Virus record (IMG/VR): IMGVR_UViG_3300029983_000007
Location: 62,001-126,000 of that record
Direction: 5' to 3' (one strand)
Length of the DNA: 64,000 bases
A model generated the notes under the pieces. The model was given only the letters and a program-made list of their open reading frames with translations, had not been told where the DNA came from and did no database searches. Of the stretch, positions 292 to 54,687 are shown one piece after another. Position 1 is the stretch's first letter, and each line of letters starts with the position of its first letter. The translations under genes were made by a program, and so were the position numbers.

Positions 292-322
292 CAAATTTAC
301 TAAAATTATTTGATAATACAAA
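292..322 (-). promoter_or_regulatory. Bacteroidota-type primary-sigma promoter
   Basis: TTTG-N19-TAAATTTG on minus strand. Confidence 0.65.
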
Positions 323-989: not shown

Positions 990-1008
990 TTTCTATTATT
1001 TTCTATTA

Positions 1009-1311: not shown

Positions 1312-1324
1312 ATTTTCTTATTTT

Positions 1325-1786: not shown

Positions 1787-1799
1787 ATTCTTATTTTTT

Positions 1800-2390: not shown

Positions 2391-2512
2391 ATTATATCTT
2401 TTAATTTTTTAATAAAACTTCCATCATTTATCTCATTCTCCCAAATTCTAATTAATTTAAAATTGTGTTCTAATGCAAATTTATTTTTCTTTATATCTTT
2501 TTCAAATTTCAA
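2387..2512 (-). pseudogene. Internally deleted Vsr-like homing endonuclease relic between intein halves
   Basis: 41-aa frame LKFEKDIKKNKFALEHNFKLIRIWENEINDGSFIKKLKDII; overlaps IntN stop and IntC ATG. Confidence 0.7.
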
Positions 2513-3371
2513 CTAAAAAATATTTATCAGTTAAATTTCCTGCTGGTATCCATTCAGCATACTCTTCAATATTTGATGAGTTAACTAAACCTTTATATTT
2601 TATATTTACAACATAAAATTCATGATTTTTTGTGCATTCTATGCCATTTATAATAATAATTTCCTCATTTCTATCAAACTCTAATTTATTTAATACTTTA
2701 TTGAGTTCTCCATTATGACTATAAACTTCATCTCCAATTTTTACATCAATTATATCAATATATCCTTCTGAAGTTTTAACTTTCATGCTAGGTGTAAAAC
2801 AGCCTCCACCAATACCACATCTTAGTCCATCAGCTCCCCAATTTTGTAAATCAATAGCTGCTTCTGATGTAGCAATATTACCTGCAATTATATCCACTCC
2901 TAAATCTAATCCTTTAATTGCTTCGATTGCTTTTTTTACATTTATGTGATGACCATGTGCAACATCAATAAGAATAACATTTACTCCTGCTTCAATTAAT
3001 GATTTGGATCTTTCTAAAAAATCTCCGTTTGAACCTACTGCTGCCATTACTGGAATTTTGTGCCTTATTTTATCTTGATTGAAAGGATCATATGAACTAT
3101 TCTCAATACTTGTAATTAATTTTTTAATTTCATTTGCCTGTTCTTCAATAGACATAAATCTATGAATACATCCTACTCCTCCTAATTGAAACATTTTAAA
3201 TGCCATTTCATGTTCACAAACTGTGTCCATGGGTGATGCTACTAATGGTATCATCAACTCAAAATTTGTCGATAATTTTGTTCTTAAACTAATTTTATTT
3301 CTATGTTTAACTTCACTGTAAAATGGTATGAGTTGAATATCATCATACGTTAACGCTATGTTATTTGTCAT
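2502..3371 (-). CDS. N-terminal extein of GuaB/GuaC-family enzyme fused to split intein N-half
   Basis: LTYDDI, SPMDTV, GGVGCIHR, IDVAHGH, AGNIAT, GIGGG|CFTPSMKV...CTKNHEFYV. Confidence 0.92.
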   Translation of the reverse strand: MTNNIALTYDDIQLIPFYSEVKHRNKISLRTKLSTNFELMIPLVASPMDTVCEHEMAFKMFQLGGVGCIHRFMSIEEQANEIKKLITSIENSSYDPFNQDKIRHKIPVMAAVGSNGDFLERSKSLIEAGVNVILIDVAHGHHINVKKAIEAIKGLDLGVDIIAGNIATSEAAIDLQNWGADGLRCGIGGGCFTPSMKVKTSEGYIDIIDVKIGDEVYSHNGELNKVLNKLEFDRNEEIIIINGIECTKNHEFYVVNIKYKGLVNSSNIEEYAEWIPAGNLTDKYFLVEI

Positions 3372-3390
3372 TCTTTATTTTATTTGTTTT

Positions 3391-3846
3391 TTATTTGTTT
3401 TTTGGTAGTAATAATAACTTTAGATATCTACTATTCAAATCAACACTATTGTTCATGTGTGATAATAATATTGGATGTAATTTATAACTTAAATCTGAAT
3501 CAGATATTACATCAAAGTCACCAATGAATTTTTTAAAGTTTTTCATTACACTTTTACTATCACGTATGTCAGAATTTAATATGAAATTTAGAATATTTAG
3601 AATTTCATATTCATCATTATCAATTTTCCACATTTTACAATATTCTGACCAAAAATCAGCACTATAATCTATTCTTTGTGACCTATATTTATTTTTAACT
3701 TCACTTATAAATTCATTTTTACCCAATTTATTAAAAAAAGATGTAGTCTTTTCTATTAAATAATCAGGTGATGTAGTTATAATTTTATTATCATTTAACA
3801 TAATTCCAAGATAATAAAATACATTATATGCTTGATTTTTAGTCAT
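3391..3846 (-). CDS. hypothetical protein
   Basis: 151 aa ORF in operon-like run. Confidence 0.6.
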   Translation of the reverse strand: MTKNQAYNVFYYLGIMLNDNKIITTSPDYLIEKTTSFFNKLGKNEFISEVKNKYRSQRIDYSADFWSEYCKMWKIDNDEYEILNILNFILNSDIRDSKSVMKNFKKFIGDFDVISDSDLSYKLHPILLSHMNNSVDLNSRYLKLLLLPKNK

Positions 3847-3852
3847 AATTTT

Positions 3853-4245
3853 TTAATAGTTATCGTTACTTACCATTTGAATATATGTGTTAATTACTCC
3901 TGTGATACCATATTTTTCAAATTTTTTACGTAATTCTTCTTCTTGTTCTGATGTACGATCTTTAAATTCAATCACTTCTCCGTCATCTAATCTTCCTAAT
4001 GATTCTCCTACTATAAGAGTATTATAGTCTTTTTCTCCAAAATAATTACCATCTACTTCAACACTAAAATCATTGTCAATTTTATTTGAAAAAAATTCAA
4101 ATTTATCATAATCATCTTCAATGTTATCAAATTCTTCGTCTTTAATGTTTAAGAATTTTGCTAACTCATAAATAGTAAGTTTAATTCCTCTTACAACGAA
4201 AGAAGAACTACTTGAATTGCTTACAAATCCACTTCTAATTTTCAT
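3853..4245 (-). CDS. NSSSSS-leader family protein
   Basis: MKIRSGFVSNSSSSSF. Confidence 0.85.
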   Translation of the reverse strand: MKIRSGFVSNSSSSSFVVRGIKLTIYELAKFLNIKDEEFDNIEDDYDKFEFFSNKIDNDFSVEVDGNYFGEKDYNTLIVGESLGRLDDGEVIEFKDRTSEQEEELRKKFEKYGITGVINTYIQMVSNDNY

Positions 4246-4262
4246 ACTTTTTAATTTATTTT

Positions 4263-4703
4263 TTAATAATTTCCTCCACTTTGTATGTGAATGACATCAT
4301 TGTTTACATTTATTCCTGTTTCACACAAATATCCTTCTAATCCGTCTCCAGAATCATCTGATGCAGAGCCTTCATAATAACGATATTCTTTATTTAATAT
4401 TTTCACTAAATCTTCTCTTGGTATGTGAGGATATCCTTGATCAATTATTTCATCTATCATTTCGTCATCTGATAATTTATTACCTGAATCACAATAATTT
4501 TCAAATATATCTTTAATGCTCATTTCTTTAAGATTTCTAATCATCCAATCTGATAGTCCATTTGCAAAGTCAAATAATATTGAATTTTCATTCAAATCAA
4601 ACAACTTCATAAGAGTATCTTTTGATAATTCTTTTTCATTTTTTACAGTAACAATGAAAGAACTACTACTGCTATTACTAACAAATCCATTTCTTAATTT
4701 CAT
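4263..4703 (-). CDS. NSSSSS-leader family protein
   Basis: MKLRNGFVSNSSSSSF. Confidence 0.85.
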   Translation of the reverse strand: MKLRNGFVSNSSSSSFIVTVKNEKELSKDTLMKLFDLNENSILFDFANGLSDWMIRNLKEMSIKDIFENYCDSGNKLSDDEMIDEIIDQGYPHIPREDLVKILNKEYRYYEGSASDDSGDGLEGYLCETGINVNNDVIHIQSGGNY

Positions 4704-5059
4704 GATTTTTTATTTAATAGTTCTGTTATTTTTTTACTATCAGCGACAACAATTTGACCGTCATCTGGTCCACCTTCTACAGTTGCTATTACATATGCAC
4801 TAATTACATCATTTAAATTATCAAAAAAATCATATTCATGATTTTTATCATACTTTTTTGAATAATCATATATTTCTTCATTGTAGAAACCCCCGTCATC
4901 AACTAGCCTTTTTAACAATTCTTTAAATCCATCTAATGGAAAATCTTCATATTCATCAGTGATCTTTTTATAGTCAACAATATCAAGAAAATTCTCAGGT
5001 AATAGAATTACAAAAGACGAGCTACTTGAGTTGCTAACAAATCCTTTTCTTATTTTCAT
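4700..5059 (-). CDS. NSSSSS-leader family protein
   Basis: MKIRKGFVSNSSSSSF. Confidence 0.85.
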   Translation of the reverse strand: MKIRKGFVSNSSSSSFVILLPENFLDIVDYKKITDEYEDFPLDGFKELLKRLVDDGGFYNEEIYDYSKKYDKNHEYDFFDNLNDVISAYVIATVEGGPDDGQIVVADSKKITELLNKKS

Positions 5060-7355: not shown

Positions 7356-7654
7356 TTTTCTAAATCTTTTTTAGAAATATATTCAATAACGTCTTTTGAT
7401 TTTTTAATTTCAGAAATAACCAATGAATATAATGAATCTTTAATTATTATTTTGTCATCATTTGAAGAACTTTCTAATATTGCTAATAGATTACTCATAG
7501 GACTTAATTTATTTCTAACATTAGCAAGTTCTTCAATTTGATATTTTTCAATCTCTTTAAGAAGGTCTTGCTTATCATTCCAACTTGATGCTGGTTGTTG
7601 CTCGGAATCAAATTTCCAAAAACTATTTACTAAATTTAAAATTTTGCTTTTCAT
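7352..7654 (-). CDS. hypothetical protein
   Basis: 4-nt overlaps on both sides. Confidence 0.6.
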   Translation of the reverse strand: MKSKILNLVNSFWKFDSEQQPASSWNDKQDLLKEIEKYQIEELANVRNKLSPMSNLLAILESSSNDDKIIIKDSLYSLVISEIKKSKDVIEYISKKDLEK

Positions 7655-7902
7655 AACATTTTCAATTTTTCCAATTTTTCTAATCTTAATATTTTAATTT
7701 TGTAAGTTTTCATTTTATTCAAGAATAAATCTTCATTAGTGAAATCACCTAAGAAAATATCATATCCACCGTAATATAATTTATAATTAGTAAAATATCT
7801 CATTTCTACTTCACGTACCATAAATTTGTGAGTATAACCATACCAAGTACGATCTTCAATATCATATCTAAAATTATTTAATATTAGGGTAGCTTCTGTC
7901 AT
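7651..7902 (-). CDS. RxxKL-tail small protein
   Basis: ends ILRLEKLEKLKML. Confidence 0.65.
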   Translation of the reverse strand: MTEATLILNNFRYDIEDRTWYGYTHKFMVREVEMRYFTNYKLYYGGYDIFLGDFTNEDLFLNKMKTYKIKILRLEKLEKLKML

Positions 7903-9951: not shown

Positions 9952-11031
9952 TTAAATTTTATATAGAGGACAATCACGATTACAACGAATAAGGTTATTT
10001 CTAAAATTAATAGTCTTTTCGTTATTCCAAATATCATCAATAAAATTACCACATTTTAAAACATTTAGTCCTTCTTTCCAATTTTCTGTATTTGGAGTAA
10101 ATGAGCAAGGAAAATAATTTCCTTTGACATCAATATAGCTACTATAACAACTTGACTCACATGGCTCTACACATTGCTTCATTTTGTTTCTGTATTCATC
10201 TGATAATGAGTTATCTGATTCCAAATATTTTAGAAATTTGTGACTACTGCAACTATCAAATCCTATACTTATTTTTTCATCTAATGCAAATTTGCAAAGT
10301 TCATTAAACTTATCCTGTGGTAAAGGGTGAAATCTATTTTCTGCTCTACCTTTAGTTTTTAAACTTAGTAAAACTAATGCGTTAAGATTTTTTAATCTTT
10401 CATCATTTTTACAATCTTTAATTACTTGCATTGTATAGTCAAAATTTTCCAAGCAAATCATATCGTGAATGTTTACTTGTGTCATTCCTCTATCAGTTAA
10501 TTCTTTTATTGCGTTGTAACTATTGTCTTTATTATAAGATGTACCAACTGATACAGCAACTGCTCCCATTGTTTTTGATAATCTATCATACAATTCTGAT
10601 GTCATTCGTGATCCATTTATTGTTACATTAGGAACAACATCTTGAGAGCGAGTATAATCAAAAATATCCCACATATCTGGATTTGAATCAATGTCTGTTA
10701 TTCCAAATGCTACCTGAGTTACAGTTAAAGGAAGCTTAGAAAAAATGTTTTTATATGTGTCTAATGACATATATTCACCATCTTTATTGTTGCTCTTGTA
10801 GCAAAATGAACAGTTTTGTTTACACGCTGTGTCAATTTCAATATCAGCAATTTCAGGTAATCCTATTTCTAAATCACCATCATCATCTTCTGTTTTACCC
10901 CATCTGGCAAAAAACCCTGTTTTTTTGTTAAATAAGAAATTGTAGTTTTCTGATTTTAAAATTTTAACATCTTTATTATCTACAATTAGTGCTTCTTCAC
11001 CGTTTGAAAGTTTTAATTTAGTTTGTTTCAT
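9952..11031 (-). CDS. Radical SAM enzyme with SPASM/twitch-like C-terminal domain
   Basis: CKQNCSFC (CX3CX2C); C-terminal CES...YIDVKGNYFPCSF...CNRDCP. Confidence 0.9.
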   Translation of the reverse strand: MKQTKLKLSNGEEALIVDNKDVKILKSENYNFLFNKKTGFFARWGKTEDDDGDLEIGLPEIADIEIDTACKQNCSFCYKSNNKDGEYMSLDTYKNIFSKLPLTVTQVAFGITDIDSNPDMWDIFDYTRSQDVVPNVTINGSRMTSELYDRLSKTMGAVAVSVGTSYNKDNSYNAIKELTDRGMTQVNIHDMICLENFDYTMQVIKDCKNDERLKNLNALVLLSLKTKGRAENRFHPLPQDKFNELCKFALDEKISIGFDSCSSHKFLKYLESDNSLSDEYRNKMKQCVEPCESSCYSSYIDVKGNYFPCSFTPNTENWKEGLNVLKCGNFIDDIWNNEKTINFRNNLIRCNRDCPLYKI

Positions 11032-11285
11032 ATTTTGTTTAATTTGTTTAATTTGTCTCTTCTTTCAGATTTTAATGATGATTCAAATAATTCAATATAA
11101 TATAATGTATAGGGTTGTTCTGATATTCCTATACGCAAAATGTCTTTGTTAATAGATGAATATTGTAGTCCATCTACAGTGTAATTTTTATCAAAACTCA
11201 AATCTGATGGTATTCCAATTTGCTCAAATATGTTTGTTGGTTTTTTGAGTATAACTTTATCACCAATTTTCAAGTTTGTTATCAT
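11028..11285 (-). CDS. KIGD-type small protein with RxxKL tail
   Basis: LKIGDKVILK ... ERRDKLNKLNKI. Confidence 0.7.
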   Translation of the reverse strand: MITNLKIGDKVILKKPTNIFEQIGIPSDLSFDKNYTVDGLQYSSINKDILRIGISEQPYTLYYIELFESSLKSERRDKLNKLNKI

Positions 11286-14690: not shown

Positions 14691-14846
14691 TTATAGATTA
14701 TTTAATCTATTTAACTTTTCAGTTCTATCATTTTTTAATTTCTTTCTTTCTTCTTCTCTATCAAATATCATTTTAAATGTATAGTTATAAAATGCAGGAT
14801 TTGCTACTAAGTCGTAGCTGAAAAGTTTACTTGATTTTATTTCCAA
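14691..14846 (-). CDS. Small protein: prohead-protease-like peptide fused to RxxKL tail
   Basis: Manual translation LEIKSSKLFSYDLVANPAFYNYTFKMIFDREEERKKLKNDRTEKLNRLNNL (TTG start). Confidence 0.55.
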   Translation of the reverse strand: MEIKSSKLFSYDLVANPAFYNYTFKMIFDREEERKKLKNDRTEKLNRLNNL

Positions 14847-15138
14847 TTTGCTTCAATTTCTTTTTTCTTAGATGCTTAACATATTCATTAGGAAAGTTAT
14901 CATAGTCCAATACAGGCTTGTTTGAAGCTTCCTTTATGACATCTAATTGCCATTGTATTGACTCAACTGGATCATCACATTCACTTTCATAAGATATTAT
15001 AGTAATTGGATTTTCAGTACAAGCTTCAGGTAAGTCCGTTTCATCGTTATAATATACTTCATAAATACTAAAATGAACATCAGAGTATAAATCTGTTGTT
15101 ATTCTTTTTGCTAAAATTCTATAATTCCAATGTGTCAT
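14827..15138 (-). CDS. hypothetical protein with RxxKL tail
   Basis: WNYRI...IYEVYY; ends HLRKKKLKQI. Confidence 0.7.
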   Translation of the reverse strand: MTHWNYRILAKRITTDLYSDVHFSIYEVYYNDETDLPEACTENPITIISYESECDDPVESIQWQLDVIKEASNKPVLDYDNFPNEYVKHLRKKKLKQIGNKIK

Positions 15139-15429: not shown

Positions 15430-15723
15430 TTATTGAATTGAATTTAATTTGTTTAATTTATTTTTTCTTGATAAATTTTTGATAGCATTATCAATTAGGT
15501 TATCTGTAATTTCTTTTTTATAATATCTGAAATTATAAGAAGACTTCATTATTTCTAATTGATGTTCATTTGCATTCATTAATTTATTTAAAATACCCTC
15601 TTCTAATTCTTTATAGAATAGCATTTGACCTACCACTTGAATATCCTTATATTTTAATGTGAGTTCTGAAATTAATTCTAAGTTATCACAACTTTTTTTT
15701 AATTGTTCAATTAATTCCTCCAT
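15430..15723 (-). CDS. RxxKL-tail small protein
   Basis: ends LSRKNKLNKLNSIQ. Confidence 0.65.
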   Translation of the reverse strand: MEELIEQLKKSCDNLELISELTLKYKDIQVVGQMLFYKELEEGILNKLMNANEHQLEIMKSSYNFRYYKKEITDNLIDNAIKNLSRKNKLNKLNSIQ

Positions 15724-20867: not shown

Positions 20868-22742
20868 TTATTTTATTTCCTCAAAATCCACGTCTGTTAC
20901 ATTTTCAGAATCATCTTTTTTGTCAGATGAATTGCTTTCATTCGTTGACTGATTTTTTGATTCTTCATAAAGTTTACCACTAATGTTTTGCCAAACATCA
21001 TTAAGTTCTTTGGTGTATTTATCAATATTATCAACATTTTGAGTTTTGTGAGCTTCTTTAAGATTATCAAGTTTAGAATTCAATTCAGTTTTGTTTTCTT
21101 CATTCAATTTATCACCAAATTCTTCAATTTGTTTTTCAGTTTGAAAAATCATTGAGTCAGCTTGATTCAACTTATCAACTTTTTCTTTTTCTTTCTTATC
21201 AGCATCAGAATTTTGTTCAGCTTCCATTTTCATTCTTTCAATCTCTTCTTTTGTTAGAGATGAATTACCTTCAATCCTAATGTCATTCTTTTTTCCTGTT
21301 GCTTTATCAACTGCAGTAACTGTCAAAATATTATTTGCATCAATTGAAAACGAAATTTCTATTTGCGGTACTCCTCGTCTGGCTGGCATAATTCCATCTA
21401 AATTAAAAGTTCCCAACATTTTATTATCCTTAAACATACTTCTATTTCCAGTTGAAACATTAATCTGAACACCAGGCTGATTGTCAGTGGCTGTACTGAA
21501 TATTTGTGTCTTAGTTGTAGGAATTGTTGTATTAGCCTCTACCATGACACTGGCTACACCGCCCATACTCTCCAGTGAGAAGTTTAAAGCTGTAACATCG
21601 AGTAATAAGATGTCAGTTGTATCACCAGCAAGAACAGATGCTTGTATAGCTGCACCTGATGCAATTGCAGTATCAGGATTAAGTGACTTATTCGCTTTCT
21701 TACCAAAATATTTTTCAATACTTTCTGACAAATATGGAATTCTAGTGCTACCTCCAACAAGTACAATTTCGTCAATATCTGAAACTTTCTTACCACTTTT
21801 ATTCATTGATGATTGAATCAATGATATTGTTTTATCAACATAGAATTGAATCAATTGTTCAAATTTAGATCTTGTTAATTTTTGAACCAAATGTTTAGGT
21901 TGTCCATCTACAGCAGTGATGTATGGTAAATTTATTTCTGTTTGTGTAGTATTAGACAATTCTATTTTTGCTTTTTCTGATGCTTCTGTAACACGTTGTA
22001 GAGCCATTGGATCTTTACGAATATCAACGCCTGTTTCTTTTAAAAATTCATCAGATATAAAATTCACAAGTGCGTCATCAATTAAATTACCACCTAAATC
22101 TAAATCACCATCAGTTCCAATAACTTCAAATAATCCGTCCTCTATATCTAAAACTGAAAAATCACTTGTACACCCACCACTATCAACTATCATATAAAGT
22201 TTACCAGTTTTATCTTTAATATTTAATGATGCTGCTGTTGGTTCAGATATAATTCTATCAACAGTAAATCCTGCTATTTCACCTGCAACTTTTGTACTGC
22301 TTCTTTCATCTGAATTGAAATATGCTGGAGTTGTTATGACCGCATTGGTTACATTTGTTCCAAGGTAATCTTCTGCTGTTTTTTTCATTTTTTGAAGGAT
22401 CATTGCAGAAATTTCTTCTGGTGAATATATTCTTTCACCAATTTTTACACCAGCCTTACCATTATTATCAACTATATCATAAGGACGTTTAAGATGTTTA
22501 ACTTCCTCATAAGTTCTACCAATAAGTCTTTTGATATTAAAAATTGTGTTTTTTGGATTTAATGCTGCTTGTCTTTTTGCAGATTCACCAACTTTAATTT
22601 CTCCTGTTTTTTCATCAAATGATACAATTGAAGGAGTTGATAGCGATCCTTCTGAATTAGGTATGACAATTGTTTGTCCACCTTCTACTATAGATACGGC
22701 TGAATTGTATGAACCTAAATCTATTCCAATAATTTTTCCCAT
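20868..22742 (-). CDS. dnaK: Hsp70 chaperone DnaK
   Basis: IIGIDLG, TPAYF, LVGGSTRIP, GVPQIEISF, C-terminal DVDFEEIK. Confidence 0.97.
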   Translation of the reverse strand: MGKIIGIDLGSYNSAVSIVEGGQTIVIPNSEGSLSTPSIVSFDEKTGEIKVGESAKRQAALNPKNTIFNIKRLIGRTYEEVKHLKRPYDIVDNNGKAGVKIGERIYSPEEISAMILQKMKKTAEDYLGTNVTNAVITTPAYFNSDERSSTKVAGEIAGFTVDRIISEPTAASLNIKDKTGKLYMIVDSGGCTSDFSVLDIEDGLFEVIGTDGDLDLGGNLIDDALVNFISDEFLKETGVDIRKDPMALQRVTEASEKAKIELSNTTQTEINLPYITAVDGQPKHLVQKLTRSKFEQLIQFYVDKTISLIQSSMNKSGKKVSDIDEIVLVGGSTRIPYLSESIEKYFGKKANKSLNPDTAIASGAAIQASVLAGDTTDILLLDVTALNFSLESMGGVASVMVEANTTIPTTKTQIFSTATDNQPGVQINVSTGNRSMFKDNKMLGTFNLDGIMPARRGVPQIEISFSIDANNILTVTAVDKATGKKNDIRIEGNSSLTKEEIERMKMEAEQNSDADKKEKEKVDKLNQADSMIFQTEKQIEEFGDKLNEENKTELNSKLDNLKEAHKTQNVDNIDKYTKELNDVWQNISGKLYEESKNQSTNESNSSDKKDDSENVTDVDFEEIK

Positions 22743-22760: not shown

Positions 22761-22994
22761 TTATTTTTTATTAATTTTTATTAATTGTAATTTTCTATAT
22801 TCTTTTAGTGATATGAATCTGTTAGCATCAAATCTACCTTTTATATTAGTTAATCCTACACTATTAACATTATAACTATAACAATACTCATCTATGACAT
22901 ACGTAGAATATTTTTTTAAATTCTTATATGGTTCAAAAGTAGTAGCATCATCACCATCATCAATACAAACAACTATATCTCCTATTTTAAACAT
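22761..22994 (-). CDS. KIGD-type RxxKL-tail protein
   Basis: MFKIGDIVVCIDD...RFISLKEYRKLQLIKI. Confidence 0.7.
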   Translation of the reverse strand: MFKIGDIVVCIDDGDDATTFEPYKNLKKYSTYVIDEYCYSYNVNSVGLTNIKGRFDANRFISLKEYRKLQLIKINKK

Positions 22995-26195: not shown

Positions 26196-26226
26196 CAAAT
26201 GTACTACATTTATTTTGATTGACAAA
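26196..26226 (-). promoter_or_regulatory. Bacteroidota-type promoter for rtcB
   Basis: TTTG-N19-TACATTTG. Confidence 0.7.
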
Positions 26227-26467
26227 ATATTTCATTCAATTTATTTATTTTATTTATTTTATTCATTCTTAAAACTCTTTTACTAATGAAAAATGATCCA
26301 TAACTTATATAACATATAACTCCAGCATCTGTCATTATTGATATAGCTCCAAGCATTATTTCTAATACTTTATAATCTTTGCCTACTGAAATAAGGTGAT
26401 CATTTGTGTTATCAATTTTGATGCAAGTAACAATTTCACCAATTTTATATTTATTTATTTTTTTCAT
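26210..26467 (-). CDS. KIG-type RxxK-tail protein
   Basis: YKIGEIVTCI...VLRMNKINKI. Confidence 0.65.
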   Translation of the reverse strand: MKKINKYKIGEIVTCIKIDNTNDHLISVGKDYKVLEIMLGAISIMTDAGVICYISYGSFFISKRVLRMNKINKINKLNEIFCQSK

Positions 26468-26789
26468 TTATTTTATTAAGTTTCAATGTTCTATATTCTT
26501 TTACCCCAATGAATCTTTTCATATCAAAAACAGTATGTCCATGTATCTTTTCAACTTCATCTAATATATATGATGTGTTTTCATATGTACTACTGGTATT
26601 ATCAATTTTGTCTCCACAATTTCCATCATCTCCCCAATATGTATGAATTTCTTTAATTGTATAATATTTATACTTTTCTAATGGATTTATTTTATGATAT
26701 TCTAAAATACAAGAAGAATAATCATAAAATATTTCCTTTGAGTAAGGTTTATCATCAATACAAACCATAATATCACCTACTTTGTACAT
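26451..26789 (-). CDS. KVGD-type RxxKL-tail protein
   Basis: MYKVGDIMVCIDD...KEYRTLKLNKI. Confidence 0.7.
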   Translation of the reverse strand: MYKVGDIMVCIDDKPYSKEIFYDYSSCILEYHKINPLEKYKYYTIKEIHTYWGDDGNCGDKIDNTSSTYENTSYILDEVEKIHGHTVFDMKRFIGVKEYRTLKLNKINEKNK

Positions 26790-27017
26790 ATCTTATTAAG
26801 TTTTTCTAATTTCATTTTTCTATAATAAGAAGTTTTAATAAAATATGATGATTTAAACCATAATACAATATTTCTTGTTTCAATACGAATGTAGATTGAA
26901 TAAAAAAGATGATTTGTTGATTTTATTTTATATCTTTCTCATTTTTTTTAGATATTCACGAGAAAGGTAATCTCCATCATCATTAATAAAAGTAACAGAA
27001 TCACCTACTTTGAACAT
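26777..27017 (-). pseudogene. Disrupted KVGD-type RxxKL-tail gene
   Basis: MFKVGDSVTFINDD...; break at A8 run near 26942-26949; resumes to YYRKMKLEKLNKICTK. Confidence 0.65.
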
Positions 27018-27274
27018 ATTTTATTGAGTTTTTCTAATTTCATTTTTCTAATTGATTGATCATCTGTGAAAAATTCTATCGGTATAAATTGGGAAAATCT
27101 TTTTGTGTCAGTTTTTATACAAATTTTATTAAAAAAATGATAATCTAAATCATTGATTTTATATTTTTTGCCTATTGTTAAATGTTGTTCCCAGTAATCA
27201 TCATTGTCATATTTTACGCAAGTAACAACTTGTCCAATTTTAAAATCTTGATAAGTCAATTCTTTATTTTGCAT
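27005..27274 (-). CDS. KIG-type RxxKL-tail protein
   Basis: FKIGQVVTCV...SIRKMKLEKLNKICSK. Confidence 0.7.
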   Translation of the reverse strand: MQNKELTYQDFKIGQVVTCVKYDNDDYWEQHLTIGKKYKINDLDYHFFNKICIKTDTKRFSQFIPIEFFTDDQSIRKMKLEKLNKICSK

Positions 27275-27543
27275 AATTTATTGAGTTTTATTTTTCTTAA
27301 AATTGAAATCAATTCTCTTTCAGTTATAAAATGATTACTTATTGATTGTCTGCATATATTTCCATTGATATTAGATTTAATAATTATTCCATATTTTGAA
27401 TTATTATTGTTATAACTTATTGAAAGTATATCTACATCATGTGAAATATTTAAATTAAATTTTTTGTTATAATATTGTCTTAATTCTCTTAATAAGAGTA
27501 AATATGATTTAATGTCTAAGTTTGAAACTATATTGTCTGACAT
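27256..27543 (-). CDS. RxxKL-tail protein
   Basis: ends ILRKIKLNKLCKIKN. Confidence 0.6.
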   Translation of the reverse strand: MSDNIVSNLDIKSYLLLLRELRQYYNKKFNLNISHDVDILSISYNNNNSKYGIIIKSNINGNICRQSISNHFITERELISILRKIKLNKLCKIKN

Positions 27544-27866
27544 AATTTTACAAGTTTTTGTTTTCTCAAAAAAATATTATGTTCTTTATCATCAACAAAT
27601 TGATATAGCACATCACCTATAACTTCATGATTAGAATACATAAGTGTATATATTTTGTGTTCAAACCTAATAGAAAAAGATGTTTCGCATGAATAGAAAA
27701 TTTCAAACCTTCTATTGTATCTTTCATTAAGTAATGTTATTGCAGCAGACCTAATTATTTCTTTTCTTTCATCTTTTGTAATAAAATTATCCATTTGATA
27801 ACAATTACGAGGCATACCCCATAATCCATTATCTTGTTTTTTTGATTTTATTGGTATTATATCCAT
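27528..27866 (-). CDS. RxxKL-tail protein
   Basis: ends FLRKQKLVKLCQTI. Confidence 0.65.
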   Translation of the reverse strand: MDIIPIKSKKQDNGLWGMPRNCYQMDNFITKDERKEIIRSAAITLLNERYNRRFEIFYSCETSFSIRFEHKIYTLMYSNHEVIGDVLYQFVDDKEHNIFLRKQKLVKLCQTI

Positions 27867-27876
27867 GATAATTTAA

Positions 27877-28383
27877 TTATAATTTGCCTAAACTATTCAG
27901 TTCATTATTCAGTTTAGATCCAAGCAGTTCCAAATTTTTCAGTTGATTTTTTACTTGATTTATACTATCATTAAAATCTTCTTTGATATTATTATTAAAT
28001 TCTTCTATATCATCTTTATTTATTAACTCATCTAATTTTTTATACAATTCTTCACGTTCCATATTGTTTGCATTATAATCAAATTCATCATTTTCAGTAT
28101 CTTTTTCATATTGAGATTCATTTTCAGATATCTTTTTGTTTACAGATAGTATATCATCTTTTGTTTTATTAGATAATTCTTTAAATTTGAAAGTATATTC
28201 TTCAGTTATAAGAGGACACCATTTTGGTTTATATTCATTCTCATCTAACTCGATATAATGTTCATTTAATTTTAAATAATTTGATAATACGCATATATTT
28301 GTGTCTGGATTTACTGTTGCATCATAGTCATATTCTGTGTGACAAAAAGGGCAATTCAAGCAACCATTTACTGTTTTTTTCAT
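27877..28383 (-). CDS. Cys-rich N-domain plus coiled-coil protein
   Basis: CLNCPFC...C...PKWCPL. Confidence 0.65.
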   Translation of the reverse strand: MKKTVNGCLNCPFCHTEYDYDATVNPDTNICVLSNYLKLNEHYIELDENEYKPKWCPLITEEYTFKFKELSNKTKDDILSVNKKISENESQYEKDTENDEFDYNANNMEREELYKKLDELINKDDIEEFNNNIKEDFNDSINQVKNQLKNLELLGSKLNNELNSLGKL

Positions 28384-28550
28384 TTTAAGTTATTTATTTT
28401 TTCTATCTTTTTCTTTCTTTCTATTTTTGTTATTTTTCTTTTTAGTTCAGCAGCTAATTTTTCATCTATATCAAAAGATTCTGGATATAAACTTGCATAA
28501 TCAAAATTAGATATACTATATAAATCTTCAAATTTCAGATTCTTCTTCAC
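28380..28550 (-). CDS. Small protein: PolB motif-A-like peptide fused to RxxKI tail
   Basis: Manual translation (GTG) MKKNLKFEDLYSISNFDYASLYPESFDIDEKLAAELKRKITKIERKKKIEKINNLK; ATGA-coupled to next gene. Confidence 0.6.
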   Translation of the reverse strand: MKKNLKFEDLYSISNFDYASLYPESFDIDEKLAAELKRKITKIERKKKIEKINNLK

Positions 28551-29187
28551 TACAATTTATTTTATTTAATTTTATTTTTCTATTGAATTTTATCAATAGT
28601 TCAGTATCCTTATATCTTAATATAGACAATTCAAATCCGTTATTATTATAATGATTTTCTAATTTAGATATAAATAATTCAAAATTTTCAGATAGAACTC
28701 CATTTTTTTCAAATATTTTTGGCTTGTTATTTTTATTTTCATATATTCCTCTAATTAGAACCTTATTTATACGTGTTGAAAAATTTATATAATCTTGGTC
28801 ATTGCATAATTTCCAATTTTGATTTAATATTAATTTTTTAATTTTTTTATATTGTTCATCTATGATACCCCAATAGTGATATTCATTTTCACTGTCAGCT
28901 CCTTTGTTATAGCTACTTATAAATATTACATATGGAGTATCTTTATATAAAGTTTTGAATAATTCATATTTAGATTTGCAATCTAAATCAAACACTGGAT
29001 AAATAACATTTTTAAATTTTGACTCAATTAAAACTTCACAATATCTATCAATATTAATCATAGTTCTGAAGTATTTCATTATACTACCAATAGATTTATA
29101 TTTTAGTTTTGATGTTGTATCATAACTTCCATAATGTGTTGTTTGATGTAGATATATTAATTCATTTTTATTTTTAAATAAAATCAT
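28528..29187 (-). CDS. hypothetical protein, possible AEP primase-like fold, RxxKL tail
   Basis: VFDLD, SS...HYW, D.DY; ends FNRKIKLNKI. Confidence 0.55.
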   Translation of the reverse strand: MILFKNKNELIYLHQTTHYGSYDTTSKLKYKSIGSIMKYFRTMINIDRYCEVLIESKFKNVIYPVFDLDCKSKYELFKTLYKDTPYVIFISSYNKGADSENEYHYWGIIDEQYKKIKKLILNQNWKLCNDQDYINFSTRINKVLIRGIYENKNNKPKIFEKNGVLSENFELFISKLENHYNNNGFELSILRYKDTELLIKFNRKIKLNKINCSEEESEI

Positions 29188-30152: not shown

Positions 30153-30410
30153 ATGAAATATCATGTCGGTGATAACGTTGTGTTCATAAATAATTCCAAA
30201 AATGCTTACGATTGGAACATAACTGAGTATAAAATCTATAAAATTTATGGATATTCAATTCATAAATCTCAAATTGTATATTCTGTCAAATTTGGAACAA
30301 CTATTCAAAGTTGGTACAGTGAATGTGACTTCATGTCATTAAAAGAATATAGAAAATTGAAAATAGAAAAAATAAATAAACTAAAAAATGGGTATATTGG
30401 AGATAGATAG
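30153..30410 (+). CDS. VGD-type RxxKI-tail protein
   Basis: YHVGDNVVFI...FMSLKEYRKLKIEKI. Confidence 0.65.
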   Translation: MKYHVGDNVVFINNSKNAYDWNITEYKIYKIYGYSIHKSQIVYSVKFGTTIQSWYSECDFMSLKEYRKLKIEKINKLKNGYIGDR

Positions 30411-30937: not shown

Positions 30938-31514
30938 TTTAATAGAACATGCAAAAAAAGAATTTATAGCATTAGGATATAAACCAGTTGATGAATGTGA
31001 AGAAGGACCAAATAGATGGGTACAAGAAAATGTATTGGAATTACTTGAGATGTTTTCTAAACAAGGACATTCAGGATTTTCAGCAAAAATTGTTATTGAC
31101 TATTTTAAAAAATTAGCAAATTTTAAACCAATTGCGCCAATTATGTGTACTGATGATGAATGGATCGATGTTTCTATATATAATAATGATGTGACTTATC
31201 AAAATACTCGTTGTTCTGCTGTTTTTAAAAATTCAATAAATGACTCACCATATTATTTGGATGCAATAGTTTTTGTTGAAGATGGAAATTCATCTTATAC
31301 TGGAGGTGCTTTTAATAAGAAGCATGAACGTATCACAAGTAGTCAAGAAATAAAAATTCCGTTTATTCCAAAATCTTTTTATGTCGATGTTGTAGATATT
31401 GATGGAGAACATCACATTAAAGATGAATCTCAATTAAAGGAAATTTGGGAATATTATGAGCATCAAGAAACAAAATCATTTATTAGATTACAAAAATTAA
31501 AAGCATTAAAATGA
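30930..31514 (+). CDS. phage protein with RxxKL tail
   Basis: QGHSGFSA motif; ends FIRLQKLKALK. Confidence 0.7.
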   Translation: MSNLIEHAKKEFIALGYKPVDECEEGPNRWVQENVLELLEMFSKQGHSGFSAKIVIDYFKKLANFKPIAPIMCTDDEWIDVSIYNNDVTYQNTRCSAVFKNSINDSPYYLDAIVFVEDGNSSYTGGAFNKKHERITSSQEIKIPFIPKSFYVDVVDIDGEHHIKDESQLKEIWEYYEHQETKSFIRLQKLKALK

Positions 31515-31729
31515 AAATAACAATAGATGAATCACAATTTGATGTCAAATGGGATTTTGGAGATTTACCAGATAATCCCAGTAAAAGTTTGACTATTGAT
31601 ATGTTAAATAGGTGGCAAGAATTTATAAATTATGACAAAATAAATGAAGCAAGAAAAGAAGCAAGAAAATTAAGAATTGATAAATTAAATGAAATAATTT
31701 CAAAATCAAATGACAATACAGAATTATAA
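31511..31729 (+). CDS. RxxKL-tail protein
   Basis: KLRIDKLNEI. Confidence 0.6.
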   Translation: MKITIDESQFDVKWDFGDLPDNPSKSLTIDMLNRWQEFINYDKINEARKEARKLRIDKLNEIISKSNDNTEL

Positions 31730-34900: not shown

Positions 34901-35848
34901 TTACAAGTTAAATTTGGTTATATCTTCATAAAATGGATTTTCCTTTATAAAATCAGCAAATCTCTCATAAAAAAGTTCTCCATTATTCTTTTTTAACATA
35001 TTATAAAATTTAGGATATGCACCCAATCTCAATAATTTTGTTGATATGTCAATACCTCCTAATCCAGATTCATAATATAATCTATTGTATATTAAAATAA
35101 CAAAATCATCATACATATATTTTTTAAGTGGAGTCATAAAATCATCTATTATATTAAAATTTTTCTCAATCATTGGTAACATATTTGAAAATGTTTTCAT
35201 ATCTTGAATTATCACACCATTATCAAATAGAGTTTTAAATATATTTATTACTATATTTTTACTTTTATCACTATAATGTCTTAGTTGATAAGTCAAAGGA
35301 TATAAATAACTTACTTGGTCCTTACCATTTAAATTTACATTGTTTTTTATTAATAATTCTAATATTTTTTTATTTAATATGGATCCTGTGAGAACTGATT
35401 GAGAATTGATATCTATTTTATTTATATCTACTCCATCGTTAATTATTTTTTGATATAACTCAACATTGAACAACTTCTTTATTGCTAATGTAATTAGTGT
35501 TGTTCTATTAATTTTGGTTACTTGATTAATATTAGCTCCTAAATCATACAATTTTTTGAATACTTTAAGACTCTTGCAAAAAAATAACACATTCTCGCCT
35601 GTAGATTTTACTACTTGATTTAAGTCAACTTTAAATTTTAAAATATAATCAATCAAATCTTCATTATTAGATGAAACTACACTCATTAATACGTTTTTAC
35701 CACTTTTATCACTATAATTAACTAATCTATTAATTAATGCTGAGTTTTTGTTGTCTTCTGTTTCTAATGATTTTAATATTTCAATTATATCTTCATTAGA
35801 CATTGATATGTTTTCATTTAATAGAAACATGTTATATTTTTTTATCAT
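34901..35848 (-). CDS. Ankyrin-repeat protein with CTS-like N-terminus and KFNL end
   Basis: GKNVLM, GENVLF, GANIN, GVDIN repeats; MIKKYNMFLLNE...ITKFNL. Confidence 0.75.
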   Translation of the reverse strand: MIKKYNMFLLNENISMSNEDIIEILKSLETEDNKNSALINRLVNYSDKSGKNVLMSVVSSNNEDLIDYILKFKVDLNQVVKSTGENVLFFCKSLKVFKKLYDLGANINQVTKINRTTLITLAIKKLFNVELYQKIINDGVDINKIDINSQSVLTGSILNKKILELLIKNNVNLNGKDQVSYLYPLTYQLRHYSDKSKNIVINIFKTLFDNGVIIQDMKTFSNMLPMIEKNFNIIDDFMTPLKKYMYDDFVILIYNRLYYESGLGGIDISTKLLRLGAYPKFYNMLKKNNGELFYERFADFIKENPFYEDITKFNL

Positions 35849-42850: not shown

Positions 42851-44191
42851 ATGGCTAAAAAAGAAAAAAGTGATAAAATATTTGTACTTGATACAAGTGT
42901 AATACTTTATGATCACAATGCAATTTACAATTTTGAAGAAAATGATGTTGCAATTCCTATTACAGTATTCGAAGAATTAGATGATTTCAAAAAGGGTAAT
43001 GACACAATTAATTATGAGGCAAGAGAATTTATTAGAAAAACAGATAAATTAGCATCTAAATGTAATTTGAGCGATTGGATTCCTATTGGTAAAGGAAAAG
43101 GTAGAGTTAAGGTTGTGATGAATGAAACAACTGGAACAACTGATGCTTGTTTAGTTTTTAAATCTACAAAGCCAGATCATTTAATTTTAAATACTGCGTT
43201 GTCATTGGTAGAAGAATATCCTGACAAAAAGATTATACTTGTATCAAAAGATATAAATTTAAGATTGAAAGCTAAATCTTTAAATGTTAATTCTGAAGAT
43301 TATTTAACAGGTAAAATTAAAGATACTGATAAATTATTTACAGGTAGATCAACAATTGAATTAGATACAGATGATATAATTACTAAACTATATCAAGATA
43401 ATGTTTGTACACCACAAGAACTTGGTATTACAGATTTATTAAATAATAAATATTTAATTATTAAATCATCTATTTCTGCTGCATCAGCTTTAGCATATTA
43501 TAATTCATCAAAACAGCAAGTGGAAAGAATAGATAAAGAAACATGTTATAAAATAACACCAAGAAATTCTGAACAAGTATTTGCGTTACATGCATTATTA
43601 AATCCTGATGTTAAATTAGTATCATTACAAGGAGTTGCAGGAACAGGAAAAACATTGTTAGCTTTGGCTGCTGCACTTAGTCAGAAGAGAAATTTTAAAC
43701 AAATATTTTTGGCGAGACCAATTGTGCCATTAAGTGGAAAAGACATAGGCTATCTTCCTGGCGATGTTGATCAGAAGACATCAGTGTACATGATGCCTCT
43801 GTTCGATAATCTAAAATTTATACAAAGTCAGTTTAAAGATACTGATAAGGAATATAAATTCATTCAAGATTGTATTAAAGACGAAAAAGTAATAATAACT
43901 CCTTTGACATATATTCGTGGACGTAGTATTTCAAATGTTTTTTTTATTGTTGACGAATCTCAGAACCTTACTCCTCATGAAATAAAAACTATTATAACAA
44001 GAGCAGGAGAAGGTACAAAGATTGTGTTCACTGGAGATATAAATCAGATCGACACACCTTATTTAGATGCTCAAAGTAATGGATTATCACATTTAATTGC
44101 TAAAATAAAAGGACAACCTATTTATTCTCATGTGACTCTTGAAAAAGGAGAACGTTCTGAATTAGCAAATATTGCAAATGAATTACTTTAA
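42851..44191 (+). CDS. phoH: PIN-PhoH (PhoH2/YlaK-like) protein
   Basis: N-terminal VLDTSV PIN domain; GVAGTGKT, YIRGRS, DESQN, GDINQID. Confidence 0.92.
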   Translation: MAKKEKSDKIFVLDTSVILYDHNAIYNFEENDVAIPITVFEELDDFKKGNDTINYEAREFIRKTDKLASKCNLSDWIPIGKGKGRVKVVMNETTGTTDACLVFKSTKPDHLILNTALSLVEEYPDKKIILVSKDINLRLKAKSLNVNSEDYLTGKIKDTDKLFTGRSTIELDTDDIITKLYQDNVCTPQELGITDLLNNKYLIIKSSISAASALAYYNSSKQQVERIDKETCYKITPRNSEQVFALHALLNPDVKLVSLQGVAGTGKTLLALAAALSQKRNFKQIFLARPIVPLSGKDIGYLPGDVDQKTSVYMMPLFDNLKFIQSQFKDTDKEYKFIQDCIKDEKVIITPLTYIRGRSISNVFFIVDESQNLTPHEIKTIITRAGEGTKIVFTGDINQIDTPYLDAQSNGLSHLIAKIKGQPIYSHVTLEKGERSELANIANELL

Positions 44192-46603: not shown

Positions 46604-46846
46604 TTAATTTACTTCACTAAGAGTTTTGAGTTTTTGTTTACGAATCATTTTTTTTACAAATAAATGATAATCATATAGTTTTATTGATATTTTAATATTT
46701 CTATATTTTGCCAATTCCATATCAAAATACTTTACTGTGTAGCAAGCTACTTCATCAGAGTAAGAGTGTATTTTTATATCTTCTATTGTATTTTCCCCTA
46801 ATGCATTTATAGATAATAAATAACTCTTTACTGTTGGATTTTTCAT
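46604..46846 (-). CDS. RxxKL-tail protein
   Basis: ends MIRKQKLKTLSEVN. Confidence 0.65.
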   Translation of the reverse strand: MKNPTVKSYLLSINALGENTIEDIKIHSYSDEVACYTVKYFDMELAKYRNIKISIKLYDYHLFVKKMIRKQKLKTLSEVN

Positions 46847-48311: not shown

Positions 48312-48464
48312 ATGAAAAACAAATCAAAAATTTCGATATCATTAAAAAATGAATTGATAGATTATTTAAATGACTTGAGTTTAAATAAATCTAAATTTAT
48401 AGAAAAATTAATAGAAGAGTATAAAATAATAAAAATAAATAATGATAATAACAAAAAAAGTTAA
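48312..48464 (+). CDS. Small ribbon-helix-helix protein upstream of endonuclease
   Basis: MKNKSKISISLKNELIDYLNDLSLNKSKFIEKLIEEY; below track cut-off. Confidence 0.7.
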   Translation: MKNKSKISISLKNELIDYLNDLSLNKSKFIEKLIEEYKIIKINNDNNKKS

Positions 48465-49431
48465 AATTCATATTAAAGGAATATCAATAAAAAGATATAA
48501 AAAATTAGGTTATAATGTTGATACTAAAGGATTAAATACTATTAATGTTGAAGATCTTCCTAAATGTAGTAATATTAAAGTCATGGTGAAATGTGATAAT
48601 TGTGATTATGAAAAAGAATTAAAGATTCAAGATTATTATTTATCTTTTAAAAATAATAAATATTGTTGTAATAAATGCTCATATGAAAATTATAAAAAAA
48701 CAATGTTAGAAAGATATGGAGTTGAAAATGGATTTCAATATAAAGACATAAAAGAAAAATCTAATAGCACTAAAATAAAATTATATGGAGATGAAAATTA
48801 CAATAATAGAGAAAAAGCGATAGAAACATGTTTAGATAAATATGGTGTTGAAAATCCTAATCAAAATTATAAAATAAAAAAAAAATCTAATAATACTTGC
48901 TTAGAAAAATATGGATTTGAAACAGCATCTAAAAATGAAAAAGTAAAGGAAAAAATAAAAAAAACAAATTTGAAAAGATGGAACAGTACATGTACATTAC
49001 ATTCAGAAAAACAAATTGATAAAATTAAACAAATATTTATTGATAAATATGGAGTTGATAATCCTATGAAGAATTTAGAAATATTTTTAAAAGCCCAAAA
49101 AACAGCTCTAAATCGTAAAAAATTTAAAGAAACTGAATTATTATATCAAGGTACATATGAATTAGATTTTTTAAATAATTATTATGAAAAAATTAATATT
49201 GAAAATGGTAAATCAATAAAAATAATTTATAATAATAATAAAACTGTGTATCATTCTGATTTTTTTTTATCTGAAAAAAATTTAATTATAGAAATAAAAT
49301 CATCATATTGGTATAATAGATATTATGATAAAAATATAATTAAACAAAAAGAATGTGAAAAATTAGGATATAATTATATCATAATAATAGATAAAAATTA
49401 TAATGATTTTAATAAATTAATAATGATTTAA
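48442..49431 (+). CDS. Putative homing endonuclease: Zn-finger, KYGVEN repeats, PD-(D/E)XK nuclease
   Basis: CDNC/CNKC; several (K/R)YGV(E/D)N repeats; YHSDFFL...IIEIKS. Confidence 0.75.
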   Translation: MIITKKVKIHIKGISIKRYKKLGYNVDTKGLNTINVEDLPKCSNIKVMVKCDNCDYEKELKIQDYYLSFKNNKYCCNKCSYENYKKTMLERYGVENGFQYKDIKEKSNSTKIKLYGDENYNNREKAIETCLDKYGVENPNQNYKIKKKSNNTCLEKYGFETASKNEKVKEKIKKTNLKRWNSTCTLHSEKQIDKIKQIFIDKYGVDNPMKNLEIFLKAQKTALNRKKFKETELLYQGTYELDFLNNYYEKINIENGKSIKIIYNNNKTVYHSDFFLSEKNLIIEIKSSYWYNRYYDKNIIKQKECEKLGYNYIIIIDKNYNDFNKLIMI

Positions 49432-49470: not shown

Positions 49471-50952
49471 TTATATATTTGTTTCTTCTAATTTTTTTAA
49501 TTCATCTTTTAACTTTTCAAGTTCTTCGTGTTTTTGATTCATTACTTTCTTCCATTTTTTTCTATCAGAATAAACTTCTCCCATTACTTGAGTAACAACA
49601 CCATCTTCATTCTTAAATACTGATCCATTGAGAGTTACAATATCATCAGGTTCAATTGTTAATTGATGTCCATTAAATAATGAGTAATCTTTACCTTTTA
49701 CTTTTTGTCCTTTATATGAGTCTGCTGATATGTTAAATTCTCTCATTGTGGTAGGATACAGGGATGCGAAGTCAAAACAACAAGTCCATGTTGCCATTCC
49801 TCTCACTGGATCTTTAACCCATCCACCTTTAATAGATTCAGATTCAGAATCACTATATTCACTATCTTCATTTCTTACAAGTACAATATTCTTTTGATCT
49901 CTTAATTTTTCTCTTAAAATTCCTTCTGTCAGTGCAAGTGTTGAAATTGCATCTTTAATTTTAATTTTACCTAATACAGCCATACCATAAAGAATATCTA
50001 CATATTTCATTTTAACGTGAATTCTTTGTACCAGACAACTATCTACAGCATTATAAAAAACGAATTTCTTAAAATCTTCTCTATGTAATCTTTTTAAATC
50101 TCCATCATAGTTAATTTTCTTGACTTCTTTACCAAGAATTTTTTCTGATGCAAAATCAAGAGATAAACTTTCTTTAACTTTAACAGATTGATCCCATTTC
50201 TTAAATAATTCCATATAATCCACTATAACTCTATGAGCTGGTAATTCAGCATAATCTAAATGTATTGCATTAGGAGGATTGAATGGTTTGTTAAGTTTCT
50301 TTGTGAAAGATGCTACTTCAGGTTCTAGTCCTAATTTTCTTGCCCTTGCAACTAAGAATGTCCAGTCATATGCAATAAAATTCCAGCCAGTCATTACTGG
50401 CATTTTTGGAACTAATTTATTGAAAAATGCATGAAGCATATCAAATTCAGTTTTATAATGAACATATTTAAATTTATAATCAGTATCAAATTTTTTGAAG
50501 TGAGTATTTAAATCTGATTCAATGTTTTCAATTTGTTTTGAATCCAGTGATTCTGTTCCAATTACTAACACTTTATTCTTATTTACAATTGATATTGTTT
50601 GAATCGCACTTTCTGCTAAATGAGGTTCAGGTTTTTTATCTAATATTTCATTTTCAATATCGACAAAGAATATATCTGGTTCATTATAACTATATATTTC
50701 ATTTTTTTCATCTTCATCAAAACTATCAATAAAATCATAAATAGAATATCTATTAGGATATTTTGTGAATATTTCTTTTACAGCACTACCATCCCATGTA
50801 ACATATCTACCAGATTTTTCTGAATCATCATCAGTAGTTTTTATGAATTTTGTACATCTTGCCCAAGGTTTATATTTTAATTTTATTTGACCTGATTTAT
50901 CTATGTAACTTATTATAAGGTTATTATTTCTGTATTCTGTGTCTATAAGCAT
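49471..50952 (-). CDS. Family B DNA polymerase, N-terminal subunit (exonuclease plus motif A) of a split gene
   Basis: FVDIE, TGWNFIAYD, YNAVDS, GGWV, FDFASLYP; ends in the fingers helix; no KxxxNSxYG or DTDS. Confidence 0.88.
   Translation of the reverse strand: MLIDTEYRNNNLIISYIDKSGQIKLKYKPWARCTKFIKTTDDDSEKSGRYVTWDGSAVKEIFTKYPNRYSIYDFIDSFDEDEKNEIYSYNEPDIFFVDIENEILDKKPEPHLAESAIQTISIVNKNKVLVIGTESLDSKQIENIESDLNTHFKKFDTDYKFKYVHYKTEFDMLHAFFNKLVPKMPVMTGWNFIAYDWTFLVARARKLGLEPEVASFTKKLNKPFNPPNAIHLDYAELPAHRVIVDYMELFKKWDQSVKVKESLSLDFASEKILGKEVKKINYDGDLKRLHREDFKKFVFYNAVDSCLVQRIHVKMKYVDILYGMAVLGKIKIKDAISTLALTEGILREKLRDQKNIVLVRNEDSEYSDSESESIKGGWVKDPVRGMATWTCCFDFASLYPTTMREFNISADSYKGQKVKGKDYSLFNGHQLTIEPDDIVTLNGSVFKNEDGVVTQVMGEVYSDRKKWKKVMNQKHEELEKLKDELKKLEETNI

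Positions 50953-51111: not shown

Positions 51112-54687
<3,576 letters not shown>

Follow-up and report, generated by a model that had tools for sequence, protein, structure and literature searches.

A conserved 56-codon gene of a huge peat-bog phage encodes a mini-protein with a polymerase motif A-like block

Main finding and genomic context

A GTG-initiated ORF of 56 codons (ORF56) in a huge peat-bog phage is a real, conserved gene, whose predicted product is little more than a block resembling the active-site motif A strand of the phage's own family-B DNA polymerase (polB), joined to a basic helical tail that is shared by many small proteins of this phage. It belongs to a family of mini-proteins that has not been described, and it may work by imitating the polymerase strand, although this function is only inferred from sequence. 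The DNA analysed (the window) is a stretch of 64,000 nt, positions 62,001 to 126,000 of the 330-kb IMG/VR viral contig IMGVR_UViG_3300029983_000007, and it is also found in peat metagenomes. It has 25% G+C, and encodes Hsp70, a collagen-repeat protein, PhoH-PIN, a radical-SAM enzyme and ankyrin repeats, while its polB N-terminal protein is 55% identical to that of the 735-kb uncultured phage LR756501 and more distantly related to the polymerases of T4-like and Lak phages, indicating that it derives from a huge phage. The relevant features, all on the minus strand, are as follows.

28380..28550 (-): ORF56, with a GTG start (28548..28550) and a TGA stop (28380..28382)
28482..28505 (-): codons F16-P23 (FDYASLYP), the polB motif A-like core
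28386..28463 (-): residues 30-55, predicted as one long alpha-helix
28383..28418 (-): codons R45-K56 (RKKKIEKINNLK), the generic C-terminal tail R-K-x-K-[LI]-x-K-[LI]-N
28528..28550 (-): 23-nt overlap, in different frames, between the end of the upstream 219-aa gene and the start of ORF56
28528..29187 (-): upstream 219-aa gene without assigned function, which ends with its own tail (NRKIKLNKINCSEEESEI)
27877..28383 (-): downstream 168-aa gene with a Cys-rich N-terminus followed by an acidic helical region, whose ATG overlaps the stop of ORF56
26210..27866 (-): run of five small tail-bearing genes (26210..26467, 26451..26789, 27005..27274, 27256..27543 and 27528..27866), immediately downstream in the same gene array
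49471..50952 (-): polB subunit A (493 aa), comprising the exonuclease domain, motif A (FDFASLYP, 49753..49776) and the first finger helix; the likely evolutionary source of the motif

The product of ORF56 reads MKKNLKFEDLYSISNFDYASLYPESFDIDEKLAAELKRKITKIERKKKIEKINNLK; it includes NFDYASLYPES and the stretch FDYASLYPESFDIDEK, and continues into a helix ending ERKKKIEKINNLK. ORF56 and its two neighbours belong to a long same-strand array of small genes, and the ATGA coupling with the downstream gene, as given in the original prediction, was confirmed; the strand, which had not been stated there, is minus. The observation made in that prediction, an unannotated 56-aa ORF whose FDYASLYP matches seven of eight residues of FDFASLYP in the window's polymerase and which carries a basic tail, was correct, with the single correction that 49471..50952 encodes only the N-terminal subunit of a split polB and not a whole polymerase.

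The motif within the window

FDYASLYP and FDFASLYP are the only two octamers in the six frames of the window with at least 6/8 identity to the polymerase motif, and the only two instances of DxxSLYP. Whether such a match is expected by chance had been named beforehand as a test: for this particular motif, 6e-4 to 1e-3 matches of at least 7/8 are expected per window in six frames, and none of 300 Markov-3 simulations gave one. However, in an all-against-all comparison of residue-shuffled ORFs, about nine ORF pairs with an isolated 7/8 octamer are expected, and BLASTP of ORF56 against polB aligned only 10 residues. The octamer alone was therefore suggestive but not decisive, and it was the comparative data that settled the question.

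A recent or local capture from the window's polB was excluded, since only 15 of 24 nucleotides of the motif are identical, the Ser codons belong to different families (TCC against AGT) and the flanks are unrelated. ORF56 is thus neither a pseudogene nor a recent duplicate of this polB, and it is one diverged member of an old family spread over many phages. Nor was concerted evolution seen, as the mini-protein does not co-vary with the polB motif of its own genome.

Evidence that ORF56 is a gene

A Logan contig from another sample (L004) carries the same three genes at about 80% nucleotide identity, and there the syntenic orthologue of ORF56, 73% identical, has the same GTG, the same length and the same stop. 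None of its 33 substitutions disrupts the frame, and NFDYASLYPES is untouched apart from three synonymous changes. The dN/dS value is 0.38, against 0.28-0.78 for six neighbouring genes. Among the other related loci, L012 has the same arrangement, including the 23-nt overlap that is also present in L004, whereas in L016 the 219-aa gene is absent and the mini-gene, now starting with ATG, follows the preceding gene directly; in both L012 and L016 the start is conserved as GTG or ATG with MKKN following. In L008, L009, L019 and L048 the mini-gene has entirely different neighbours. In L046, a phage from a different sample that also carries Hsp70, DUF7487 and radical-SAM genes, it sits between genes of 246 aa and 177 aa, which are comparable, in size alone, to the 219- and 168-aa genes of the window. 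A more distant relative (L003) lacks the gene at the syntenic place, so that it is accessory and dispensable.

The possibility that this is a chance ORF, or a conserved DNA or RNA element between two genes, rests on its short length, the GTG start, the overlap with the upstream gene and the lack of expression evidence. This reading is contradicted by the comparative data and is very unlikely. The antisense ORF 28339..28500 (+) was rejected as the real gene because antisense frames are interrupted by stops in relatives. A frameshift fusion with the upstream 219-aa gene was rejected as well, since that gene ends with its own tail and the mini-gene exists without it in L016.

The mini-protein family

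Megablast of the region and tblastn of ORF56 against deposited phage genomes gave no match, Pfam and PHROGs returned nothing meaningful for ORF56, the ESM Atlas returned no informative neighbour, and Foldseek of the ORF56 model against the PDB gave no hits. In contrast, an exhaustive HMMER search of 1.8 billion representatives found 17 representatives at 50% clustering, and a profile search of the 90% clusters found 62. In total 67 proteins were obtained, mostly of 43-70 aa, of which 65 keep D-x-x-x-L-Y-P, followed 15-25 residues later by the tail, ...ERK(E/K)KLEKINN(L). In a 53-member alignment D17, L21, Y22 and P23 are invariant, and S20, R45 and K48 are at least 90% conserved, while everything else has diverged almost beyond alignment. 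ORF56 has the features by which the family is defined here, namely a length of about 43-70 aa, a D-[FY]-x-[STN]-L-Y-P block near residues 10-25, a charged helix and the C-terminal R-K-x-K-[LI]-x-K-[LI]-N, and it matches a profile built without it with E 7e-25.

Relation to the polymerase

The modal sequence of the family around the block is NFDFASLYPTTMKDF, and the polB of this phage clade reads CFDFASLYPTTMREF, almost invariantly across 23 relatives. The modal residues after LYP (T-T-M-K/R-D-F) match this clade's polB (T-T-M-R-E-F) and not the general SLYPSII of the solved family-B polymerases or the SLYPSL of more distant phage polBs. The similarity in the family extends over 13-17 residues, including clade-specific ones and the F-A at the 'x' positions of the motif. 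ORF56 itself reads S-I-S-N ahead of FDYASLYP and E-S-F after it, and has lost the T-T-M-R-x-F extension (ESFDID).

A profile built without the window's own protein found the window's polB as the best non-self hit among 402 ORFs (E 2e-5, at motif A), and the next hits were tail-bearing ORFs matched through the tail. Profile-profile comparison by hhalign gave E 8e-7 against the single polB, and a probability of 96.3% and E 1.7e-9 over 35 columns against an alignment of the polB clade. Against the PDB the family profile had a best E of 0.0021, and 59 of the 60 listed hits were family-B polymerases at motif A. Nineteen of 53 members individually hit Pfam DNA_pol_B (PF00136; best E 7e-6, an E-value and not a bit score against the 23-bit gathering cut-off), and apart from the related DNA_pol_B_2 (five members) no other Pfam family was hit by more than one member. 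The JGI pipeline had automatically named two members 'DNA polymerase elongation subunit (family B)'. Tblastn with a family member against 50,697 phage genomes hit only polB motif A regions, with huge phages as the best hits, and found no mini-gene in any deposited phage.

ORF56 is not a polymerase: it carries motif A, in the form NFDYASLYPES, but motif B (K-x3-N-S-x-Y-G) and motif C (Y-G-D-T-D-S) were both absent by a regex scan, and it gave no PF00136 hit even at E 10. With one carboxylate and without these motifs it cannot be an enzyme. The block appears to be motif A of this lineage's polymerase, acquired long ago and held under polymerase-like constraint, or it is held to the same shape, although homology as against convergence cannot be proved over 13-17 residues. 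A convergent or meaningless resemblance, on what would be one more small, basic, helical tail protein such as a nucleic-acid binder whose N-terminal block has another role, would fit the short span of similarity, the lack of a Pfam hit for the window's member alone, the roughly nine isolated 7/8 octamers expected per window, and the predicted SH3/Tudor/PWWP-like barrels of other tail-bearing proteins, which suggest that the class binds nucleic acid. The profile-level statistics, the absence of a competing Pfam family and the shared clade-specific residues make it unlikely.

The C-terminal tail

The tail, searched as R-[K..]-x-K-[LIVM]-x-[KRTQ]-[LIVM] within 14 residues of the C-terminus, ends at least 14 ORFs in the window, against one internal occurrence; two further cases were seen, and it recurs in every related locus with small-gene arrays. 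Its Leu/Ile positions use TTA, TTG, CTT, CTC, ATA and ATT, its Arg uses AGA or CGT, and between orthologues I-to-L and K-to-R replacements involve two or three base changes. The tail is therefore selected at the protein level, and a DNA-level signal was rejected. No Pfam or PHROG family matches the tail, and literature searches for it, as well as for motif A small proteins, found nothing relevant.

AF2 predicts a confident helix at residues 30-55 of ORF56 (pLDDT 90-95), the end of which is the tail, while the N-terminal motif region is predicted mostly as coil (pLDDT 58-71), as might be expected for a segment that folds on a partner. It was also considered that the tail might be the first finger helix of polB left after an internal deletion, but the similarity was not significant (hhalign E 0.2, probability 0.3%), and the tail is the generic one.

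The original interpretation, that ORF56 is a captured catalytic-motif peptide and the second member of a fragment-plus-tail class, was partly supported. The gene is genuine and its motif-plus-tail composition is real, but the capture was neither local nor recent. The N-terminal parts of the tail-bearing ORFs are diverse, and the others that were examined carry whole small domains, several of them predicted SH3-like barrels followed by the tail as a C-terminal helix, and are not recognisable fragments of larger proteins, so that a general fragment-plus-tail class is not shown.

Possible origin

Tail-coding DNA seems to act as a junction for cassette insertion. The gap 26790..27004 holds a decayed SH3-plus-tail gene and ends in a 43-nt, 93% duplicate of the tail end of the gene at 27005..27274, whereas in L012 the two flanking genes abut. 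Some family members have two motifs (P0038), two tails (P0030), or an upstream tail read into the ORF (P0041, P0043 and P0044), pointing to ongoing rearrangement. A polB fragment joined to such a junction is a plausible birth for the family. The same observations might suggest that the gene persists only as a selfish or neutral passenger of cassette shuffling, but this is unlikely, as a neutral fragment would not keep D, L, Y and P invariant across 67 proteins while the rest diverges beyond alignment, nor keep its length of 43-70 aa, nor show a dN/dS of 0.38 with synonymous changes inside the motif.

Split polymerase and possible mechanism

In this clade polB is made as two polypeptides. The 493-aa product of the window ends after the first finger helix, at the same point where the annotated subunit A of cyanophage S-CREM2 ends, and the same holds in LR756501 and in all 23 relatives fetched. 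Subunit B was not found in the window with motif regexes or by tblastn with MA9V-2 and S-CREM2 proteins, and was not located in a relative; the gene next to polB in MA9V-2 is not polB.

In the general palm fold, motif A is the central strand (beta-1) plus the start of helix A, packed between strands that follow motif B/C. In a split polB this element would therefore have to be donated by subunit A to subunit B. It is proposed that the mini-protein is a microprotein copy of the donated element that binds free subunit B, or whatever else motif A packs against, and thereby modulates or blocks assembly of the replicase, either the phage's own (timing) or that of a co-infecting relative. The tail would act as a generic helical handle, most plausibly a contact with nucleic acid or with a common partner. 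The reality of the gene, the family, the resemblance to polB, the modularity and the protein-level selection on the tail are established by the analysis, whereas expression, the binding to subunit B, any effect on the polymerase, the role of the tail and the mechanism as a whole are inferred. Gene reality and the polB-plus-tail composition are held with high confidence, but the specific mechanism, although preferred, remains doubtful, and the explanation taken together is tentative. Several points speak against it: strict conservation of the catalytic Asp and the steric-gate Tyr is not obviously required for a pure binding mimic, the mini-protein does not co-vary with the polB of its genome, the window's own member has lost the clade-specific extension, and the gene is dispensable.

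Alternatively, the mini-protein might supply motif A (metal-ligand Asp, steric-gate Tyr) in trans to subunit B, giving the phage a second polymerase form without exonuclease and hence without proofreading, for example for error-prone or specialised synthesis; more broadly, active-site strands could be exchangeable 'plug-in' microproteins. The most strictly kept residues (D, L, Y and P, and S at 90%) are exactly the active-site residues of motif A, motif A and motifs B/C lie on different polypeptides, and the motif is followed by a basic helix, as in subunit A. However, the mini-protein lacks the rest of palm part 1 and the finger helix, its tail is not detectably homologous to that helix and is shared with unrelated proteins, and its conserved R and K are spaced R-x-x-K, whereas the polB finger reads R-K-K-W-K, i.e. 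R-x-x-x-K. This reading is unlikely.

It is also possible, but unlikely, that the peptide is a decoy that titrates away something recognising motif A from outside the polymerase, such as a host defence sensor, a protease or modifying enzyme, or a factor of a competitor phage. In its favour, the gene lies in an array of small, fast-evolving, dispensable genes, typical of host-takeover or accessory regions, and the strict conservation of a short linear block on a flexible N-terminus would suit a displayed bait. On the other hand, motif A is a buried central strand in folded polymerases and a poor epitope for a sensor, no defence or anti-defence family matched in Pfam and PHROGs, and no conserved partner gene lies next to ORF56 in the loci compared.

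If the preferred reading is right, phages have turned the most conserved strand of their replicative polymerase into a free-standing microprotein and kept it under selection in dozens of lineages, which would be a new way of regulating, sabotaging or re-purposing a split replicase, and would give a compact natural peptide targeting the palm of family-B polymerases. Independently of function, the analysis provides an undescribed small-protein family that gene callers with length cut-offs miss and that is absent from 50,697 deposited phage genomes by tblastn, and a protein-level C-terminal tag (R-K-x-K-L-x-K-L-N) on more than 10% of the genes of these huge phages, whose coding DNA also seems to serve as a junction for gene-cassette insertion.

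Comparison with known systems

The closest known element is motif A (DxxSLYPS) of family-B DNA polymerases (PF00136), in particular of the split T4-like polB of huge phages related to LR756501, LR745206 and the Lak phages. The mini-protein family shares with it the hydrophobic strand, the catalytic Asp, S-L-Y-P and the clade-specific T-T-M-R/K-D/E-F continuation, and solved polB structures are hit only at motif A. ORF56 has 56 residues instead of about 900, without exonuclease domain, motifs B or C, fingers or thumb, and carries a tail that polB lacks. The two-subunit gp43 polymerases of some T4-like phages, such as S-CREM2 'DNA polymerase subunit A / subunit B', provide the context in which a free motif A strand would be meaningful, and the split point is the same in the window's polB, but ORF56 is neither of the two subunits and is a third, tiny gene 21 kb away.

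The neighbours that share the tail, though not ORF56, which has no barrel, are comparable to small SH3/Tudor/PWWP-like barrels with a C-terminal helix, such as the Bacillus subtilis prophage protein YorP (2HEQ), as they are predicted to form a small barrel followed by a basic C-terminal helix; the Foldseek matches are weak (E about 0.06-0.3).

MicroProteins (miPs) and dominant-negative single-domain paralogues, such as Id proteins and LITTLE ZIPPER, are likewise very small proteins that consist of one interaction element of a larger protein and are thought to occupy the binding site of its partner. The miPs described derive from dimerisation domains of eukaryotic transcription factors, whereas here the element is an enzyme's active-site strand, in a phage, and the interaction is only inferred. 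Finally, phage T4 Srd and Srh are small early proteins reportedly named for similarity to segments of host sigma-70 and sigma-32 and proposed as decoys. As in ORF56, a small phage protein encoded among small early or accessory genes resembles a conserved segment of a large essential enzyme subunit; Srd and Srh, however, resemble host proteins, while ORF56 resembles the phage's own polymerase, and its resemblance is to a catalytic motif and is much sharper.

Small genes sharing a C-terminal motif

More than 10% of the genes in the window end with the same C-terminal motif, R-K-x-K-[LI]-x-K-[LI]-N, with 14 C-terminal occurrences against 1 internal one. The genes concerned are:
7651..7902
11028..11285
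14691..14846
14827..15138
15430..15723
22761..22994
26210..27866 (five genes)
28528..29187
30153..30410
31511..31729
46604..46846

This motif is selected at the protein level and sits on unrelated N-terminal parts. No Pfam or PHROG family and no literature describes it, and it is possibly a helix that binds a common partner or nucleic acid. One of these genes (14691..14846, minus strand) is another very short tail-bearing ORF of 51 aa with a non-ATG start, which overlaps the next gene and reads ...FDREEERKKLKNDRTEKLNRLNNL. It was the second-best tail match to the profile of the mini-protein family (E 2e-4), and its N-terminal part matched nothing in the window.

The 'intergenic' gap at 26790..27004 (minus strand) holds a decayed small gene, which reads MFKVGDSVTFINDDGDYLSREYLKKMRKI, then a stop and NKINK.... 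The gap ends with a 43-nt, 93% duplicate of the tail end of the gene 27005..27274. In the relative L012 the two flanking genes abut. The gap looks like a gene cassette inserted by recombination within tail-coding DNA.

Variant architectures were also observed in the mini-protein family, among members from other metagenomes (proteins P0038, P0030, P0013, P0041, P0043 and P0044). They include two motif A blocks in tandem (P0038), two tails (P0030), and forms of 80-125 aa, the N-terminal extension of which itself contains a tail-like ERRK..RLN segment. These appear to be fusions with the preceding gene.

Other genes of the window

At least six neighbouring genes within 306..5059 (minus strand), namely 306..989, 1009..1311, 1325..1837, 3853..4245, 4263..4703 and 4700..5059, share an N-terminal block of the type MKIR-x-GFVSNSSSSSF, and form a local paralogue family of unknown function. 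The window also encodes the following proteins:
51112..54687, minus strand, a 1191-aa collagen-triple-helix-repeat protein
20868..22742, minus strand, a full-length Hsp70/DnaK
9952..11031, minus strand, a radical-SAM/SPASM enzyme
42851..44191, plus strand, a PIN-PhoH protein
34901..35848, minus strand, an ankyrin-repeat protein

The repeat region of the collagen gene creates long shadow ORFs on both strands (52086..53254).

The polB gene (49471..50952, minus strand) is split, and only subunit A, comprising the exonuclease, motif A and the first finger helix, is present, while subunit B is not in the window. The split point is the same as that between subunits A and B of cyanophage S-CREM2. Next to polB, on the other strand, lies a DUF7487 / treble-clef zinc-finger gene (48442..49431, plus strand) that looks like a free-standing homing endonuclease. 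A similar gene lies beside polB in the phage LR756501, and DUF7487/DUF723 genes lie in L046, a phage from a different sample.
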